A stretch of 63,027 nt of DNA, the filler included, from Hyphochytrium catenoides (taxonomy: Eukaryota > Protista > Hyphochytriomycota): the NCBI GenBank assembly GCA_900088475.1. It is 6 parts of 6 records of this genome, joined end to end, with 100 filler letters (N's around TTAATTAATTAA, not from the genome) between each part and the next. Parts side by side here need not be neighbours in the genome. Positions count along the whole stretch, not along the records: positions 20,251 to 39,801 come from FLMG01002079.1; 5 more parts are not named here. One strand, given 5' to 3'. Positions 25,904 through 38,100 of the stretch are shown piece after piece. The position numbers and the translations under genes were made by a program. The notes under the pieces were generated by a model. The model was not told where the DNA came from and ran no database searches. It saw only the letters and a program-made list of their open reading frames with translations. The stretch's first letter is position 1. Every line of letters starts with the position of its first letter.

Positions 25904-26225
25904 CTCTCTCTTTTCCCGCTCTCTCATTATCTCTCTCGGTCTCTCTGTCTGTCTCTCCCTAGCTGGCTCCCTCTCTCTCTGTCTACTCTCGTCTCTCTGG
26001 TGGTTCTGACCGACAGTTCAGCGTCGCGAACTGCTTCCTTCTCCTTCGCTCCCTACGCCGCATCCAAGCCTCACTTCCTCTCTCTCACTTCGTGCTGAAG
26101 CTCATTGTCTAAATAGAGAACAAGACTTATATCAAGCTTCAACGCCCGTGCCCGAGAAGAGACTGCAGACTGTCCGAGTCTCTCTCTCTCTCTTTTCTCT
26201 CTTTCTCTCTCGTCTTCTCCTAAGG

Positions 26226-27920
26226 ATGATCTATTACTCTTCCTCGCGCTTTTTCAAGGTGATCTTCCGTCTTCACGGAAGCGTTATCTTCGGCTCGGTT
26301 CGGCTCTTTCGCCGTGCGCTCATTATGTGCCTCATCTCCATTATTTCGGTATTCTTGGTGCGGAATAGCGCACACTTCCGGGATGTGGTTCAGTCAGAGC
26401 TCATCCAGAGACTTGTCACCGTCTTTAGCCCGCTGATGGGCCTTCTCATCTCTTTTCGCCTTAACTCAGCGTTCAACCAGTGGAGAGCGGGCCTGACGGC
26501 GTGCGATCAGTATACAAAGACAGCGAGAGACTTGGTCTCTGAAGCTTGCTCTTTCTCTGACGCCATGTTCGTGGACGCCGTTGAAAGCAGAGTCAAAGAG
26601 AGACAGAAGAAGGAAAAAGAAGAAGCGGCGTCCTTGGCTCCTGACGATGGAAGTGAGATGGCGAAGGATAAAGATCGAGGTCAGGAAGGAGAGAGATAGC
26701 AGATGAGTTGGCAGGAAGGTGTACAAGCTCGGCAGTGAAGGTAGAAAGAGAAAGAGAGCAAACAAAGGAAGGGATGGAAGAAAGAAGACGATGAAGGGAA
26801 GAGAGAACGTCGGAAGAGGAGAGATACCCTTTGTATCTCCACATAGGGGAGGATGACTCGCTCTAACGTAATGCTCCTCTCGCTATCTCTGACCCTTTCT
26901 CTACCGTCTTTTCTCTTCATCCCTCTCCCTCATTTCCTTCCATTCTCTCTCTCTCCCTCTCTTGTAGACTGCACTCTTCTAGAGGAAGCGTCAGCAGAAG
27001 ACCTCCGGATCCCGCTGGCCCGTACTGCCGCTTTTCTGTTAGAGCTCCGTAGGATGGTTCTTCTGCACATGACGCTTGTTTTCCAGCATCTCCGCAGACT
27101 CCCAGAAGAATTAGAGGCACTGTGTCGCAAGGGACTAATGACAGAGAAAGAGAGAGCGGAACTTCTCTCTTTCCAGGCCCGCCCGTGGCCTTCTACTGCC
27201 GCCACAGCCAAGGGAAGAAAGCACGCGCCTCCTCGCTCTTCCATGGTGACGGTCGAGGCAAACATTAGGCGGCATATCTCTAGGCAGCAGCACGTAGGGG
27301 TCCTCTCCGCTGGGAACGTTGGAGCGCTAAACACCCGTCTCTCCCAGCTCTCCAGCGATCTGCAGCAGCTGCACATCTTGGCACACTATCCCATCCCTTT
27401 CTCCTACGCCCAGTTTGAGAAGCTCTTCCTCTTCGTCTATCTCTTTCTCTACTCAATTGCCAGTGTGGGGAAGAACGCCTATTATACGTCTATCGCTGTC
27501 TTCCTATGGAGTCTGATCCTTCTGTCCAGCGATGAAATTGCCAATGAGATCGAGTGTCCCTTTGGCACGGACGAGAATGACATAGATCTGGACTTTAAGC
27601 TCACGGTCTCAGAGAGAGACATCAACGCTATCTGTCTGCAACAGTTGACGGCGATGGACTATGGGGCGCACCATATCCCAGACATGCAACAAGCAGAAGA
27701 GCACTTCCGGATGCATCTCTTCGATGATGGTGCCTGTCCTCTCTCTCCTTCTTCTTCTCCATTCGGGCTGCAGAGGAGACTCTCTGACATGATGAATGGA
27801 TTATTGACCTGGAGGAAGGGAGAAACGGATGAGAAGAAGGGAGAAAGTGCGGCAGGTGCTGGCATCTCCGTGTCAGAGAGCGCACCGTTGCTTCCTGATC
27901 GCACGCCCTCGAGTGGATAA
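26226..27920 (+). CDS. Bestrophin-family (bacterial/VCCN-type) anion channel; probable exons 26226-26679 and 26968-27920
   Basis: GLLISFRLNSAFNQW, YPIPFSY, EIANEIECPFGTDENDIDL. A phase-1 GT-AG intron joins the two ORFs; the donor position is less certain. Confidence 0.88.
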
Positions 27921-29108
27921 GAGCAGCTTGTGGCCCTTCTCTTTGGTTCTCAGTTCGCTTTTCCTTTCGTATCTATAGCTTTCTCCTCTCTTTCTCTCTC
28001 CCTTCTCTTTTCTCTGTTACCCTCTCCCTCCCTCGTCTCGTGTCGGCTTTGTGTCTCCGTGTTCTTATTTTTCTCTCTCTCTCTCTCTCCCTCTGCTTCT
28101 TGTCCGCGAAGTCCTCGTCTCCTACTCTCCAACAAACGCTTGATAAAAGATGATCAGAACAGATTTAGGAGACACATAGTGCAAAAGGATCATTCGTCGT
28201 TCCGCCAGCTCAACTTCAGGACACAGTTCCAAGTCAGATTGAAGATAGGCCGGTTTTCAAGTAGAGCAGTGCTCTATGAAGCCTCAAACCTAGTAATTTG
28301 ATCGAGCGCGAAGGATGCAGTCATCCCGTTCGATGCAGAGCACCCTGCGGAGAGCTGTCAAAATAGTATGGATTGACGACCAAGGTAGCAGGTTTATGCT
28401 CTCAACGAAGATGAGCTGCAAGGAGCGAGGTCAACAAAGCCCGATGAATGGAACAGGACTTATATGTGGATGAGGAAGTCCAAATGAGATTCTATCGCGT
28501 CTGCTCAACATCACCCTTGTCGGTCTCAACCGCTGCTCAGGCGCAGAACCTCTCTCGTGGCAACTCTTTGGCAAGATCTTACCCCTCCAGGGACAGAGGT
28601 CCAGCTCTACTGATGCCGACTGCTTCCTGAGAAAAGAATCAGAAGACAGGCTTCAGAAGTGATGATTTCTGAAGCTTCAGAATCCGTTTTTCTCTCACAA
28701 ATGCGTCCTTGTGACCTGGGGGTTACCTGAAGGGGTCCTGGGGGACTTCTGTGTGGAGACATTGATAGATTCGCATCCTTCCAAGACAGACTAAGCGAGA
28801 TATATTTGATAGATTCATGAATTGACATAAAAGGCATAGGAATTCACTAGACAGAGCAAAGTCTGGAACAGACAGAAAGGCGATAGGTAGGGCCTGAGAG
28901 ATACCACAAGAACGGCACAGGAAGTTGAACTTCCCCGCTGGTTTTGGTGGCATCATCAGGAGAGAGAGAGAGAAAAGAGAGAGAAAGGGGAGAGAGAGAG
29001 AGAGGAGGAGAGAGAGAGAGAGAGGAGAGAGGAGGCAGAGAGAGAGAGAGAAAGGAAGGAAGAGTGGAGGTAGAGAGAAGAGGAACAAGCGTGAAAGGAA
29101 ACAGAGCG

Positions 29109-29140
<32 letters not shown>

Positions 29141-29456
29141 AAGGAGAAAGAAGGTGGCAGAAAGAGAGCGATTCATGGACAAACTTCAGAAGAGAATCTC
29201 AGCCGTCATAGCTCGCTCTACCCTGCCTCGCGTACCACGCCTTTAGCCTTGACTGTGCCTCGAATCGAGCAGTCATCTGACCGTCCATCGGCCCTCCTGG
29301 GACCGGCATTACTCTCTCGTCAGTGTCTTTTCTTCCGCGTCCTCTCACTCTCTCGGTCTCTCTTTCCATTTATCTCTCTCTCTTTCTCGCGTTACGCTCG
29401 TGGCGTTTCGTTGATTCTTGTCCCCGAGTAGGCACAGCAGTTGGTGATAGTAGTAG

Positions 29457-30896
29457 ATGGCCTGGGGAAGAAAGACAGATCAGCACTCCGACCCTTCTTC
29501 TCTCTCCTCTCCTGCTCCAAGCCATGATGGCAAGCAGACCAAGACTTTATCTCTTCTCTCTCAAGAGGAAGAACTCTCCGAGTGTGCCTCTCTCTTGCGG
29601 AATGCGCCGATGTTTCGCTTCGCAACGGAGAAGAACCTCCGTTCGCTGTGTCGATCTATGTACCCGGTAGAGTACTCTAAGTTTGAGATCATCTGGAGAC
29701 AAGGCGATGCGCAGGAGAAGATGCTTCTTGTTTCTGAGGGAGAGATCGAGAGAACGAGAGAGATAGACGGCCAGCTGCACGTGACAGAGATAAACAAGCG
29801 CGGAGATGCCGTAGGAGTGCTCCATTTGATAGACAGAGAGCCCTGCAACTCCACCGCTATCACCCTCACGCCGGTTCGCGGCTATGCCTGCGAGACAGAG
29901 CCGTTCAATCGCACTCTTTTCCGCGAGCAGAGCTTCCAAAGAGAGGTTATCACGAGCCTTACAAAGGAGATCCGTCACCAGAAGAAGCTCCTGAACACGC
30001 CGCTTCTAGAGCAACATCCAAAGCCCACGCCATACATCGCCATCTCCGTCGCTGCTGCTGCTGAGAGCTTCTATCGAAGTGGGATGAATGCACTGCTTAA
30101 CGCTTCGATTGTCGGAGGGAAACGGGCTGCACTCTTCCCTAACATGCACATACAGATACCAGCCAGAGTGGCGTACATCAATGGGTTTAAGGGTGTTAGG
30201 CATGTGCTAGAGAACAATGTTGATCCGCAGGCATATCCTAATCCTGATGCTATGAGGATGCTTTGTGCCGTGACTCCGGGGCTGCTGATGACGCCTGTCT
30301 CTTCCATCCTAGAGGCGTGCAATGTGGGTCATCTTAATCCTGAGCCTTTGCATCGCCGCTGGGTCCGTGGTGTCGTCCCCCGCGCTGTGCGAGAGATTGT
30401 CTTTGGCGTGGGTCTCAATCAGCTGTCAGACTATGTGGAAGAGAGGCTCCCGCTGCATAGTGGAGCCTTGAACACGGCGCTAGCATCGGTAGTGTCAGGC
30501 GTTATCGCCGGCTACCTCTCTCATGTGCCGCATACGCTGTCTACGTTGAAGCTCAACTATCCGCAGAAGAGCTATTGGAAGCATGCGAGTGAGATGGTAG
30601 AGAACTGCTATAGAAAGATGCCGGCGAGCTGGAATCCGAGGCTGAGGTACACGCTTGGGGTCTTGCAGGCCTTCCTTCTCCCTCCTGGCCTGCACATCCG
30701 CACCTCTCAGATTGTTGGTTCGTTTGTCATCCTCAATGGGACGATTGCGGCATTGAAGGACTGGGATCCCATTCAAATGCTACGACCTTCTCCTCCTCCT
30801 GGGACTACTATCAAGAGAGTGCCAACTCTCTCAAGTATTGCGCTATTGGACAAGCAGCAAATCAGCAGTCCCTCAGGAGACCACCGAGGAAGATAA
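29457..30896 (+). CDS. cNMP-binding-like domain fused to a divergent mitochondrial-carrier-like domain (479 aa, intronless)
   Basis: N-terminal LRNAPMF...IIWRQGDAQEKMLLVSEGEI...GDAVG is a cNMP fold. The C-terminal part has three repeats, including LMTPVSSIL...WVRGVVPRAVREIVFG and IAGYLSHVPHTLST...PGLHIR. Confidence 0.8.
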   Translation: MAWGRKTDQHSDPSSLSSPAPSHDGKQTKTLSLLSQEEELSECASLLRNAPMFRFATEKNLRSLCRSMYPVEYSKFEIIWRQGDAQEKMLLVSEGEIERTREIDGQLHVTEINKRGDAVGVLHLIDREPCNSTAITLTPVRGYACETEPFNRTLFREQSFQREVITSLTKEIRHQKKLLNTPLLEQHPKPTPYIAISVAAAAESFYRSGMNALLNASIVGGKRAALFPNMHIQIPARVAYINGFKGVRHVLENNVDPQAYPNPDAMRMLCAVTPGLLMTPVSSILEACNVGHLNPEPLHRRWVRGVVPRAVREIVFGVGLNQLSDYVEERLPLHSGALNTALASVVSGVIAGYLSHVPHTLSTLKLNYPQKSYWKHASEMVENCYRKMPASWNPRLRYTLGVLQAFLLPPGLHIRTSQIVGSFVILNGTIAALKDWDPIQMLRPSPPPGTTIKRVPTLSSIALLDKQQISSPSGDHRGR

Positions 30897-31860
30897 ACAC
30901 ACAGGCCACGTGCGAGGTACAGAGGCCCGGGAGAGAAGATGAGAGAGAGAGAGAGAGAGAGAGAGTAGGGCATGCTTTTGAGAGGAAGGAGAGACGGGTT
31001 TGCAATGTCATATCCACATCCTCTTTTTGCCTCTGTGAGCCGGCTAACGTCTGTCATCATCCAACCACTTGGCGCTCACTCTTAGTGTTTGAAGGGCTTA
31101 GTTAGAATAGGGGCGTTATGACTCCTACAGCCTAGAGAGGAAGGGAGATGAGTTATCCTTATCAATGTTGACGGCTGCTCTGAGACGCTTTCTGTGTCCT
31201 CTCTTTTCTACTGGGCTGATCATTTCTCTTCTGTCTCTCCCTCTTTTTCCCTCTCCGTTGCGTGTGTCACATCTCCCTCTCTCTCTCTCTGTGCAGTACA
31301 TTTCTTTTTCTCTCTCTCTCTCTCTCCCTGTGCATGCTGACTCCTGACTCCACAGTTCATCCACTCCTGAGAAAAGAGTTACAAGCGTAGCTTGCTGCTT
31401 TACTTTTCTATAAAAGCGAGAGACACAAGGTGTCTCTAGGACTTTCTTCTCTGTCTCGCTTTCTTTGCTCTGAACGAGAGCGGTTATCTCTCATTCCCTG
31501 AGCATACTACTACTTCCTCCTCCTCTGTGTCTCTCGTTTTCTCTCTCTCTCTCTCAATGCTCTCTCCTGATATACCGACCACATTGTAGTGGACATCCAT
31601 ATTAAGGGTAACGGGTCGACATGGTTAGTTAGCCCTCACGGGCGGTAGAACTGCACCGCTTCATCTTCCTCCTTGGCTCTGCTGTCTACCTCGGACGACA
31701 TATAAACGAAAAATAGAGGGAAGAAACCCTTCATCATCTGTGAAACGCCATAATAAATACCTAGCAAAGGAAGAAGCAAGCCCATCCCGTCCTTCTCTCT
31801 CTTTTCTCTTACCAGAAAGAGAAGCAGAGACAACGTGAGAGAGAAAGAGACTTGGCTAGC

Positions 31861-32847
31861 TCAAATTCTTCTTTTTGCCATCAAGGGCTCCGAACTCTTC
31901 TTCAGAAGGTCCATGCGCACCCCAGGACAGATGGGCTGGTTGCTAACCATGCAATAGCCTCGACTCTCTCCTGACTCGGCATCCGTGCTCTGCATGGCCT
32001 CCCAAAGGCTCTCCACAGAGACCCAGAAAGGCGGGTATTTGAACCGCGCGACGTCCAGCACTAAGACAAGGTCTTTCTCTGGATGATAGCCTGCAATGGG
32101 ACTGAAGTGCCCTTGTCCTGTCTGCCCCAGACTGGACCGATTGAAGGCGGTCACAAGCCTCAGGTTGTCAATCTTTGTGGTGGTGATAATGTTACGACGG
32201 AAGCCCTCCAGCGTGGCATCACATGCTCGAAGGTCTACCACGTTCCCTCCGTTGCACTTGGCCAACTGGACAAACTCTGTCAATGTGATCCCCTTCTGTC
32301 CCATCTCTCTCCCTACCAGGAGACAGGAGTTGCAAGTGCCCTTCTGGCAGAGAAGGTTCTCATCGGTAAACCACCGCCAAGAGCCCTTCCAGACCCGTCC
32401 TGGGTCCACTTTGAGGCTGTTCAGCACCATGGAAAGCGTGGCTAAGCCGCAATACGCAGGCTCCGACTGCGTCGTGAACTGCTCCATCAGCATAAAGTAT
32501 GGCGCTCCTAGCCCTCCAAGGCTCATCGCCTCCTGGAACAGCTTCATGCCTTCAGGAGAGGAGAACGCTACCAAGTGCTTCGGTAGTTCTCGCTTGTAAA
32601 AACTGACTATAGGCTTTGTCTCTGCTGAGACGGAGGATAGAGGCTCAATCACCGCCTTTGTCGCGCTCAATGCGCTCTGTCTCGCTTCTCTTCCGAAGAG
32701 TATAACCGCCTGCGAGGCAGCAGAAGCAACATCTGCTGCCTCGCTAGGCTTAGCATCCACAGCTGCAGAGAGAGCGCCAACCGTTTTGGAGGTATGCAGA
32801 CGCCTCCGCGTGCTGCGGGCAAGATTTCTTGCAGCAGATGCAATCAT
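31861..32847 (-). CDS. PCS: Phytochelatin synthase (catalytic domain only) with an N-terminal presequence
   Basis: Triad motifs QSEPAYCG (Cys), GQTGQGHFSP (His) and LVLDVARFKYPPFWV (Asp). Also VDPGRVWKGSWRWF and SRGY. Confidence 0.95.
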   Translation of the reverse strand: MIASAARNLARSTRRRLHTSKTVGALSAAVDAKPSEAADVASAASQAVILFGREARQSALSATKAVIEPLSSVSAETKPIVSFYKRELPKHLVAFSSPEGMKLFQEAMSLGGLGAPYFMLMEQFTTQSEPAYCGLATLSMVLNSLKVDPGRVWKGSWRWFTDENLLCQKGTCNSCLLVGREMGQKGITLTEFVQLAKCNGGNVVDLRACDATLEGFRRNIITTTKIDNLRLVTAFNRSSLGQTGQGHFSPIAGYHPEKDLVLVLDVARFKYPPFWVSVESLWEAMQSTDAESGESRGYCMVSNQPICPGVRMDLLKKSSEPLMAKRRI

Positions 32848-35135: not shown

Positions 35136-38100
35136 TCAGTCTGTACTTAGCTCTCTCATCAGCTTTCTTCTCCACGTCATTGTCTCTTCTCCTCCTAGCT
35201 TCTGCGCTGTCAACCTATCAATGAAAGAGAGAGCTTTCTCTCTTTTCTTGGCGGTCTTCACCAGAAACTCCGTATATTCCTTGTAAGTGTTGAAGTCGGC
35301 AGAAGGGAGTGAGACAAGCACTTCCCACACCCGGGCAGACTCCTCTATGTCCTGGACTTGAATGTTGGATAAATAGCGAAGATAAACACGGAGAGGCTTT
35401 CGGATCTCAAGCGTTCTGAGCCGTAGAATGGAAGAGAATAGCTCCCGAGCTTCGGTGTGAAGACCACTACGTCCTGCGTCCCAGGCGATGTTACTGACCT
35501 AGCCATGCGTACATCAAGCAGATAAGAGTTAGCGTGCGGAAATCTCTCTCACTTTTCTCTCGGCAACCCTTTAACGTCTCCGCTCTCGCTTTCCTTCTCT
35601 GCGGCAAAACCCTTCTTCCGCTTAGGTTCTATCTACTCTTGCCCCTTTTCCCGCTCGGAAAGCATCGCCCACCGTCTATCCTGCAGTTGCTTTCTCTCTC
35701 AGAACATCTACCCCACCATTAATATGCGAATGTCTCTTCTCCATTGTCTTTCCAATGGGGAACCTAGGAACCTCATACTCGTAGTCATCCCTCGGAAGCT
35801 GTCCAACCTGACTTCCGTCCTTATCTCTTACCATCTCAGCCAGGTGATTGCAGGTCTTGTCGACGTTCTTTCCCTCCGTCAGGACAAAGTTCTCTATACT
35901 GCTCTCACGGTTGTACCTCTCCAAGGCCGCGATGGCGTGAAAAGCAATGGGCAAAAGACAAGAAGAGAGGAGGTCCATCGAGTTGCGATGATACTTTCTG
36001 AGAGAAAGTGGCCTCGTACTCTTCTTCTGCTTTAATCCTTCCTCCTTCTCTCCTTGACCTGTACCACTACTCGTCCTACTCAACTGCAGGAGAGGAAAGG
36101 GACCATCGCCTACCGGATCGCCCTAACAAAAAAAGAGTGAGATGTCCATAAACCACAGTGAGAGGTGCTTTAAGAAGAAAGGACCTGCAGAGAGCAAAGA
36201 TCAAGTTACTGAGAGAATAACCTCGTCTATACACAAGAGAGACTAAAGCCGGACCCATAGGGATAAGGAATGAGCATGGCTTTGGCTCTAATCTTCACCT
36301 GCACGAGGCCGTTCTGCATAACAAATTTGAGATGATGGCAGACCGCAAAGACGCTGGTTGGGTCGCTCTCGTATGCCAAACGGTATATGAGGCCCGCGCC
36401 TAGGCGGTCTCCCCGGTCAAAAAGAAGGAGGTGTGCAAACCCGATAAGAGCCTTTGTATGCAGCGGCTCCAGCTATGAAAAGTTTAACCCAGGGAAGAGC
36501 AAAGAGACAAAGCGTCTCCGTGAATTTACATATGGAGCTATCTCAGTCAAGAGACGGAAAGGGAAAGGTCTTCAGTAGAGCAACAGTAACAAGGAGAGAA
36601 AGGTAGAGACGGAAAGAGCAGAGCAGAGAAGTAAGAAGTGTTCCTAGCTAGAAGGGTAGGAAGGATAGACTAGGTTATAAACCAAGAGGCGGGATAGGAG
36701 GCAAAAGTAATGGACGCCAAGAGCTCGCGCTCCCTACCTCAATGGCTCTTCGATAGGCCTTCTCAGCACCATCAATGTCTCGATAATGGAATCTACGGAA
36801 TCCAGCTCAGATTGGCTAACATCCTGCGAAGAGACAGTCTTTCTTTCTCTCCATCTTTCTATGTCTCTCTTACCTAAGGAGATGCGCATAATCTTTTAGC
36901 ACATTTGCGTGATTTGGTGCGCTTTGCAGCGCTCTTTCGTAGAACTGGCGGGCTGAGTCACAGTCTAGCTTGGACTTCTGGAGGAGGATGGCGTAGTAGT
37001 ACAAAGAGCGCACATGTCGCGGATTGACCGTGATCGCCTTCAAATAGAGCTCCTCCGCTAGCTTCAGATCCTGCAAAGAAGAGCCGTACGGACGAGCAAG
37101 AGAGATGGAGGGCGAGAGATGGAAGAGAGAAGTCGGGTTAGAGGCGGAGAGAAGAGAATGAGAGGAAGAAAGAGATTGCGAGAGAGAGACAGCATGTTGA
37201 CCAACTGAGCCAGAGCTGTCTATCTCATAAGAGAGAAAGAGACACGAGGAGAAGGACAGAGGAAGACAAACAAGAAAGATAGCACCACCAGAAAGAAGAT
37301 ATAGTAAGAAAGTGGAGGTGAAGTCTGAAGGCAAAATAACGCAGGGGACTCTCTCTCTCTCTCTCTGGTCGGAATCACGCGCTGTCCCAGGGTTGGAATG
37401 ATGTTCCTACCGCGAAGATGCAATGGCACATGAAGCCATAGTTACAAAGCGTCATATAATCCGAAGAGTTGGACGACAGAGCGAGAAGGAAGTTCTTCTC
37501 CGCCTTTCTGGCCAGACTAAACCTCTCTTCTCCGCTGCGAACCAACGCCCGGAGAAACAGCGCAGTGCCTATGAAAGAACGGTAAGGCATTCCCTCTCGC
37601 ATTACCAGCTTTGGCTCCTCTCTCTTTTCTTTCTTTTGGACTCTCTCTCTCTCTTTGTTTTCTTTCTCTCTCTCTTCCCCCATCCCCGTCCCACTACTCT
37701 CTTTTCTATTTCTCTCTCTGTTTCAGTGTCCCATCTCTCTCCCTTGCTTTCTCTTCGATTCTTTGAAAGTTCTTCGTCAAGCAGCTCAAGTGTGACCCTT
37801 CTCTTTTCTTCTAACTGTTTACCTTCTGCATACTCGAGCAAGGGAATTTGCTTCACCCTCTCCTGTAAGAGAAGAACATCCGTATGCTGAAAAGGCGTCT
37901 CTCTATCAAAGAAGGAGAGAGAGAAAGACGGAGATAGGGTAGCGCCTTTCTCTTCCTCTCTTTCTTTCTTGAGACTTTCCTCACAGTCCGGACTGAGCAG
38001 AATGCCGCAAAGATGCGTCACGCGATCAAGAAGAACGAGAAGAGAAGAAGAGGAAGAGAAAGGAAGATATGGGCGCGACGCATAGCCGTCTCTCTCTTCC

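Follow-up and report, generated by a model that had tools for sequence, protein, structure and literature searches.

What does a protein do that joins a domain of the cyclic nucleotide-binding (CNB) fold to what looks like a mitochondrial carrier of the SLC25 family, when the signature motifs of both are non-canonical? The question is raised by one gene at positions 29457-30896 (+) of a 63,027-nucleotide stretch of the Hyphochytrium catenoides genome (assembly GCA_900088475.1; parts of six records joined end to end, hereafter the window). The gene is a complete single-exon open reading frame (ORF) of 479 aa plus a stop codon, with an in-frame TAG at 29454-29456 immediately 5' of its ATG. An initial annotation, made from the sequence alone, described a cyclic nucleotide monophosphate (cNMP)-type domain fused to three carrier-like repeats, and stated that the characterized regulated SLC25 carriers use EF-hands, as a review of the family confirms (PMC7611774). 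We find that the gene is an ordinary member of an unstudied family and not a unique oddity. On the models described below, it is predicted to encode an integral membrane protein of this conserved protist family.

Fold and motifs of the C-terminal domain

The C-terminal domain (residues 193-433; 30033-30755) was modelled on its own with AlphaFold2 (AF2), reaching a predicted local distance difference test score (pLDDT) of 93.6 and a predicted template modelling score (pTM) of 0.88. The model is composed of six helices, H1 (residues 193-219; 30033-30113), H2 (230-254; 30144-30218), H3 (263-289; 30243-30323), H4 (306-330; 30372-30446), H5 (336-367; 30462-30557) and H6 (412-433; 30690-30755), in close agreement with the six helices first placed at about 30030-30760. 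The high-probability Foldseek matches to this model, a comparison with SLC25 structures that had been proposed as a check, are SLC25 proteins only, namely carriers of the Tetrahymena complex IV, human UCP1 and ADP/ATP carriers (AAC). The lowest E-values belong to 8b6h_DV (4e-4) and UCP1 (8hbv, 9e-4), followed by AAC entries, and the TM-scores are about 0.5 for carriers and 0.15-0.24 for everything else. An exhaustive VIA search gave carriers Z-scores of 16.9, 16.8, 11.3 and 11.3 with the next fold at 6.5; the two top carriers, UCP1 and the Tetrahymena complex-IV carriers, align over 229-238 residues. Re-scoring the Foldseek list placed 11 SLC25 entries at Z 10.6-16.8 and the next fold at 4.9, and a shape search of the ESM Atlas led to a Mito_carr cluster with TM-scores of 0.66/0.73. 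The initial annotation had named a C-terminus without the carrier fold as the result that would speak against it; Foldseek, VIA and the ESM Atlas agree on a carrier fold. Judged from these models, the C-terminal domain is predicted to adopt the six-helix SLC25 carrier fold, modified in that the AF2 models have no matrix helix in repeat 1 and an enlarged one in repeat 3.

The conservation pattern of the six helices bears on their surroundings. Their variable columns are hydrophobic (81% hydrophobic, mean Kyte-Doolittle value +1.74) and their near-invariant columns polar (72% polar, mean -1.67), so that conservation and hydropathy are correlated (Spearman rho 0.43, p 2e-8), while for the soluble sensor domain, the control, the sign was the opposite (-0.19). 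A barrel that is embedded in lipid and has a conserved polar interior would be expected to show this pattern, which rules out a soluble helical bundle. As over half of every helix is conserved, the helical conservation moment, calculated for a cavity face, was weak; it was significant for H1 and H2 only, where 72 and 89 shuffles out of 2000 were at least as high as the value observed, and we do not rely on it.

The three carrier-like repeats of the initial annotation stand in the fold. They do not stand in the sequence, as pairwise hhalign comparison of the three sub-alignments detected no significant repeat (E 0.066, 0.34 and 0.076, with 1-16 columns aligned). The sole sequence bridge to carriers is a match to PF18405 (SLC25_like, 'Mitochondrial SLC25 homolog') in 13 of 60 family members, in which profile positions of about 145-275 align collinearly with H4-H6, beginning within the region 30342-30395. 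These matches score below the gathering cutoff of 34.5 bits, with 25.7 bits for the best member and 11.4 bits for the Hyphochytrium protein. Measured against what defines SLC25 membership, the family has the barrel fold and lacks the sequence repeats, the Px[DE]xx[KR] signature and a match to the family hidden Markov model (HMM).

Where the signature would be expected, other residues are found. The kink of H3 carries PVSSILE (30294-30314), which keeps the proline of Px[DE]xx[KR] and has S282 and L285 in place of the charged pair; P280, S282, L285 and E286 are each present in all 148 ungapped sequences. In H5, HVPHTLSTLK (30522-30551) stands in place of Px[DE]xx[KR]x[KR], with T360 and T363 where the charged pair would be. 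H356 and H359 are invariant here (149/149), P358 is found in 118/149 sequences and is otherwise V or I, position 360 is N in 144/149 (T in the Hyphochytrium protein) and K365, retained at +7, is present in 147/149. H1 has no proline, and by helix-end register A212 and N215 occupy its signature positions.

The strings and coordinates given in the initial annotation are accurate (PVSSIL at residues 280-285, VPHTLS at 357-362 and, in the sensor, GVLHLIDREPCNSTA at 120-134). It had called both signature motifs degenerate and the carrier signature eroded. They are indeed non-canonical, but erosion does not describe them: 139-148 of 149 sequences share the H3 and H5 replacement residues. As the substitutions run through the whole family and hardly vary among 149 homologues of several eukaryotic supergroups, the motifs are a conserved alternative set that is derived and not decayed.

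The best-preserved carrier remnant is EPLHRRWVRGVVPRAVRE (30342-30395), which has W-x-R-G, a P at +3 and the pair R312-E313 at +7/+8. Carrier features of repeat 2 extend to either side of it, as E296...W302-x-R304-G305-x-x-P308-x-x-x-R312-E313...F316...D325, and G305, R309, R312 and E313 are identical in 149/149 sequences. A residue seven to eight positions past the H4 glycine is, in what we take to be the register of bovine AAC, contact point II. An R[DE] pair at contact point II is the class rule of amino-acid carriers (PMC6769469). If this register holds, the invariant R312-E313 would match the R[DE] pair of amino-acid carriers. Of the cytoplasmic network motif [FY][DE]xx[KR], again placed by motif register and not by superposition, H4 alone retains an acidic residue (D325, followed by E328-E329-R330), and H2 and H6 have nothing similar.

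Besides these, the almost invariant replacement motifs comprise ESFYR, PxSSxLE, WxRGxxPRxxRE, HxPHNLSxxK and RTxQ. Essentially invariant single residues are E203, Y206, R207, N211, Q233, R237, Y240, K245, R248, E286, R304, G305, R309, R312, E313, D325, E328, R330, Y353, H356, H359, K365, R415, Q418 and N427. About 45 mostly polar or charged residues within the helices are invariant across supergroups.

The sensor domain and its cassette

The N-terminal half of the protein contains a sensor domain of the CNB fold with a long C-helix (residues 37-178; 29565-29990), close to the extent of about 29590-29980 first proposed for a cNMP-type domain. AF2, Pfam and fold searches concur on this assignment. 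The full-length AF2 model, built from a 60-sequence family alignment (pLDDT 88.2; pTM 0.70, a value that leaves the inter-domain geometry uncertain), shows a β-barrel with flanking helices at these residues. The Pfam family cNMP_binding (PF00027) matches residues 71-154 with an E-value of 6.5e-11 and 42.5 bits (cutoff 27.5), and is matched by 60/60 aligned family members. By VIA, the sensor resembles CNB domains of the CRP family, PKG, the PKA regulatory subunit (PKA-R) and channels with Z-scores of 15-18, among them 18.3 to 2pqq and 17.0 to PKG. The family profile likewise matched PKG, PKA-R and CRP among PDB sequences with E-values down to 1e-33, the closest solved structures being the PKA-R and PKG domains, and a search of NCBIfam gave partial matches that are CNB-related only.

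The sensor is thus a PF00027 domain by HMM cutoff and by fold, and departs from that family in its phosphate-binding cassette (PBC), GVLHLIDREPCNSTA (residues 120-134; 29814-29858). HMM alignment pairs the family pattern G-s-l-H...d-P-a-y-A-T-a with G-E-x-A...P-R-S/T-A-T/S of PKG, so that in the Hyphochytrium protein V121 is the equivalent of the ribose-binding Glu and C130 that of the phosphate-binding Arg. The departure from the canonical cNMP contacts that had been read from this one sequence holds throughout the family: position 121 is Glu in 0/149 sequences (S/A/T/M/V/G/L instead) and position 130 is Arg in 0/149 (A/S/V/T/C/G/I instead). Position 123, canonically Ala, is basic in 141/144 sequences (H in 120, R in 16, K in 5; H123 in the Hyphochytrium protein). 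A second sensor histidine, H108, is nearly invariant across the 149 sequences, and the cassette residues G120, P129, A132 and T133 are largely retained.

A linker (29991-30032) connects the C-helix of the sensor to H1 of the barrel. It carries the motif TPLLEQ (29997-30014), in which T181 is conserved in 58/60, P182 in 59/60, L183 in 58/60 and Q186 in 55/60 members. In two family members the CNB barrel is interrupted ahead of the PBC by an ACT-like insert (P0175, residues about 160-300; P0178, about 100-190), with Pfam ACT E-values of 1.1e-5 and 2e-3, both below the cutoff.

Family members and genomic surroundings

The same two-domain architecture recurs in hundreds of homologues. A search with the full-length protein returned 348 matches and one with the profile of the C-terminal domain 543; their identity is 39-53%, and they come from oomycetes, brown and other ochrophyte algae, diatoms, labyrinthulids and cryptophytes, and also from a red alga, Rhodelphis, a colponemid and Euglena. 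Among the matches listed there are no members from animals, fungi or land plants, and the common model organisms seem to lack the family; this is an impression gained from these matches and not from a dedicated survey. Database entries label the members only as 'cyclic nucleotide-binding protein'. In a maximum-likelihood tree the Hyphochytrium protein is sister to an oomycete-containing clade with a support of 98/90, on a long branch (1.23 versus a median of 0.36).

Long branch aside, its conserved positions are intact. None of the 47 columns that are invariant in the 60-sequence alignment is altered in it, and of the 90 positions that are conserved at 90% or above in the other 59 sequences it retains 84; five of the six departures are conservative, the exception being G76F in the sensor. 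As judged from this conservation, the gene at 29457-30896 appears to be functional and under strong constraint. Only the ends of the protein are its own. An N-terminal low-complexity extension (residues 1-36; 29457-29564) is organism-specific, has no equivalent in most homologues of the alignment and in the model its pLDDT stays under 50 over most of residues 1-25. The C-terminal tail (residues 447-479; 30795-30893) is unconserved, with a pLDDT of 39-60, and most aligned homologues have no counterpart of it.

Some family members consist of the barrel without the sensor. These forms of 257-295 aa begin with Met (P0201, P0204, P0208, P0210, P0211) and retain ESFYR, RGxxPRxxR[ED], HxPHN and RxxQ, with the R-[ED] pair at the 312-313 position kept even in divergent examples. 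TPLLEQ is missing from them, and a Pfam scan of these sequences gave zero matches. One such form (L001:1764-2537) lies inside a 6.6-kb contig, 56 bp downstream of another gene, a context which argues that it is real and not a truncated gene model.

The ORF is spanned, with few substitutions and no indels, by contigs of two separate runs in which the source organism was sequenced, leaving the frame uninterrupted in both. A contig from a soil metagenome differs from 30488-30928, the 3' part of the gene, at two positions only, which places the source organism, or else a strain very close to it, in soil; this is consistent with the placement of the protein as sister to oomycetes. Other contigs of the source organism match only 30393-30425 and diverge on both sides, reading M-R-G-V-V-P-R-S-I-R before and S-D-Y-W-E-E-R-T-S-F after this segment, and these divergent flanks reveal a second paralogue of the same family in this organism.

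The gene is flanked by GA/CT microsatellites at 28960-29138 and 30931-30965, which give rise to spurious low-complexity ORFs on both strands. Convergent with it lies a single-exon phytochelatin synthase gene of 328 aa at 31861-32847 (-) (Pfam PF05023, E 1.7e-79). Upstream, a bestrophin-family gene consists of two ORFs, 26148-26696 and 26853-27920 (+), separated by an intron of about 165 bp with the borders GAG|GTCAGG ... CACATAG|GGG; its GT...AG ends mark the genome as that of an intron-bearing eukaryote. A TPR-repeat exon is located at 36873-37334 (-).

Candidate functions and related systems

The reading that we favour, and that we give about an even chance, is that of a carrier-fold protein which transports or binds a solute under the control of a ligand, the sensor ligand being probably not canonically bound cAMP or cGMP. 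The CNB-fold sensor would be tethered through the short invariant TPLLEQ linker to H1 of a highly derived SLC25 barrel lying in an organellar membrane, likeliest the mitochondrial inner membrane. The sensor would face the cytosol/intermembrane-space side, where the APC and AGC carriers have their N-terminal regulatory domains (PMC7611774). A small ligand, other than canonically bound cAMP/cGMP, may occupy the sensor, and the conserved polar interior may bind a specific small polar or charged solute, possibly an amino-acid-like one. Ligand binding could shift the C-helix and linker so that the barrel is opened or blocked at its cytoplasmic mouth, comparable to the Ca2+ 'locking pin' of ATP-Mg/Pi carriers (PMC7611774). 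Transport, if any, would probably depart from the standard strict-exchange cycle, because the salt-bridge gates are replaced. We count the sub-threshold ACT-like small-molecule inserts of the two members in favour of a ligand sensor.

Several results weigh against this reading. PF00153 (Mito_carr) was matched by 0/60 members at E-values up to 1, and the family profile found no SLC25 chain among PDB sequences, only chance matches to thiolase and HMG-CoA reductase. When 1.84 billion representative proteins were searched exhaustively with HMMER, 387 matched at E-values up to 1e-3, 149 of them at E-values up to 1e-30, and a mere 387 matches in such a number speak of the isolation of the carrier-like domain in sequence. 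The contact-point assignment is a motif register and not a residue-level structural alignment, the relative geometry of sensor and barrel is uncertain at a full-length pTM of 0.70, and no RNA run containing the locus was found. Finally, the charged gate residues by which SLC25 alternating access is defined are gone, as they are from MTCH1/2 and SLC25A46, which do not transport, and the structure that matches best is that of a carrier incorporated in the Tetrahymena complex IV.

These last two points lead to the most serious rival, a less likely one in our judgement, that the family is a non-transporting carrier-fold protein such as MTCH1/2 (insertase/scramblase), SLC25A46/Ugo1 (membrane dynamics) or the Tetrahymena complex-IV carriers. 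Its CNB-like domain would then be a regulatory or a protein-interaction/dimerization module, and the long, CRP-like C-helix could mediate dimerization. The loss of network charges with retention of the prolines is the very pattern of MTCH1/2 and SLC25A46 (PMC7611774), complex-IV-associated carriers are among the top structural matches, no internal sequence repeat is detectable, and the absent matrix helix of repeat 1 and the expanded one of repeat 3 fit as well. However, the roughly 45 invariant polar or charged helix residues, R-E included, suit a small-molecule site better than a lipid-facing groove, UCP1 matches equally with the complex-IV carriers (Z 16.8), and sequence similarity to MTCH did not turn up, though no comparison aimed at it was made.

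A different proposal, doubtful and more speculative, takes the family to be an ancient class of the carrier fold, possibly dating from the last eukaryotic common ancestor, in which an external CNB gate replaced the salt-bridge gates. Its sensor would recognize a ligand that is not a cNMP, an amino acid or a nucleoside perhaps, and would plug or open the gate-less barrel via TPLLEQ.

A carrier genuinely gated by cAMP or cGMP, with H/R/K123 and H108 substituting for the canonical Arg and Glu contacts, is improbable. It would accord with a Pfam cNMP_binding match above cutoff, with PKA-R and PKG as nearest solved relatives, with a basic residue on the PBC helix in nearly every sequence and with the largely kept G120, P129, A132 and T133. 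Yet the phosphate-binding Arg and the ribose-binding Glu are missing from the entire set of 149, and there are known CNB folds, with changes at the same two positions of the PBC, whose ligands are different ones. The PDB titles of the trypanosome PKA-R describe it as 'cAMP-independent' and include an inosine complex, and an E311A/T318R/V319A mutant was needed for a cAMP complex.

An artefact, be it a pseudogene in decay, an ORF arisen by chance or two unrelated domains joined during assembly, might be suspected from the long branch, the organism-specific low-complexity tails and the want of an RNA run, but it is scarcely credible given the hundreds of homologues that share the architecture, the conserved positions that are kept and the near-identical soil-metagenome contig, and the pseudogene and chance-ORF forms of it are effectively refuted by conservation and by a frame left intact in the contigs of both runs.

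Full-text literature searches found no description of the family or of any CNB-carrier fusion, and in a review of SLC25 from 2025 both cAMP and cyclic nucleotides go unmentioned. If the favoured reading of a ligand-regulated carrier-fold protein is true, a carrier controlled by a CNB sensor would link organellar transport to signalling or metabolite levels by a second route, independent of Ca2+ and EF-hands. Should the proposal of an ancient class with an external gate hold, SLC25-fold proteins could act as ligand-gated uniporters or channels and not as exchangers. The conserved replacement motifs are a natural experiment that may tell the SLC25 features needed for the fold from those needed for alternating access. 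The family is widespread in protists of ecological and agricultural importance (oomycete pathogens, diatoms, brown algae), and since its C-terminal domain has no Pfam annotation, recognition of the SLC25 fold gives a testable function to hundreds of 'hypothetical' or 'cNMP-binding' proteins.

The ESM Atlas has a cluster of 123 members, about 621 aa in length and mostly from Chlorophyta, under the name 'Cyclic nucleotide-binding/Mitochondrial carrier protein domain-containing'. Like the family described here, it joins cNMP_binding (PF00027) to a carrier domain in one protein. These proteins are longer, and 100% of them have the canonical PF00153; no literature on their Mito_carr plus cNMP_binding architecture was found. 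With a feature score of 0.86 to the Hyphochytrium protein, which we treat as a lead only, we count this cluster in support of the favoured reading.

The sensor is closest in kind to the regulatory subunit of trypanosomatid PKA (6flo, 6hyi, 6h4g) and to the CNB homology domain of KCNH channels (KCNH CNBHD). Like them, it has the CNB fold with the PBC Arg replaced. According to the PDB titles, the ligand of these proteins is not cAMP, and they carry a functional side chain at the position of the canonical Ala. In the family described here this position is His, Arg or Lys and not Glu, and in contrast to both systems the ribose-binding Glu is lost too. The sensor is moreover joined to a membrane barrel, whereas trypanosomatid PKA-R is joined to a kinase partner.

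On the side of the barrel, MTCH1, MTCH2 and SLC25A46 share with the family the carrier topology, the retained signature prolines, the lost salt-bridge charges and the irregular matrix helices. They differ in being sensor-less animal proteins of the outer membrane, whereas this family belongs to protists and its polar helix interior is far more strictly conserved. In overall layout the family resembles the APC/SCaMC (SLC25A23-25) and AGC (SLC25A12/13) carriers, in which a soluble N-terminal domain is likewise followed by a short link and a six-helix SLC25 barrel. Unlike theirs, the barrel here is without the Px[DE]xx[KR] charges, a Mito_carr match and a detectable threefold repeat. A scan of the 60 members at E-values up to 1 listed 25 families, none of them an EF-hand family: where APC and AGC sense through EF-hands, the sensor here has the CNB fold.

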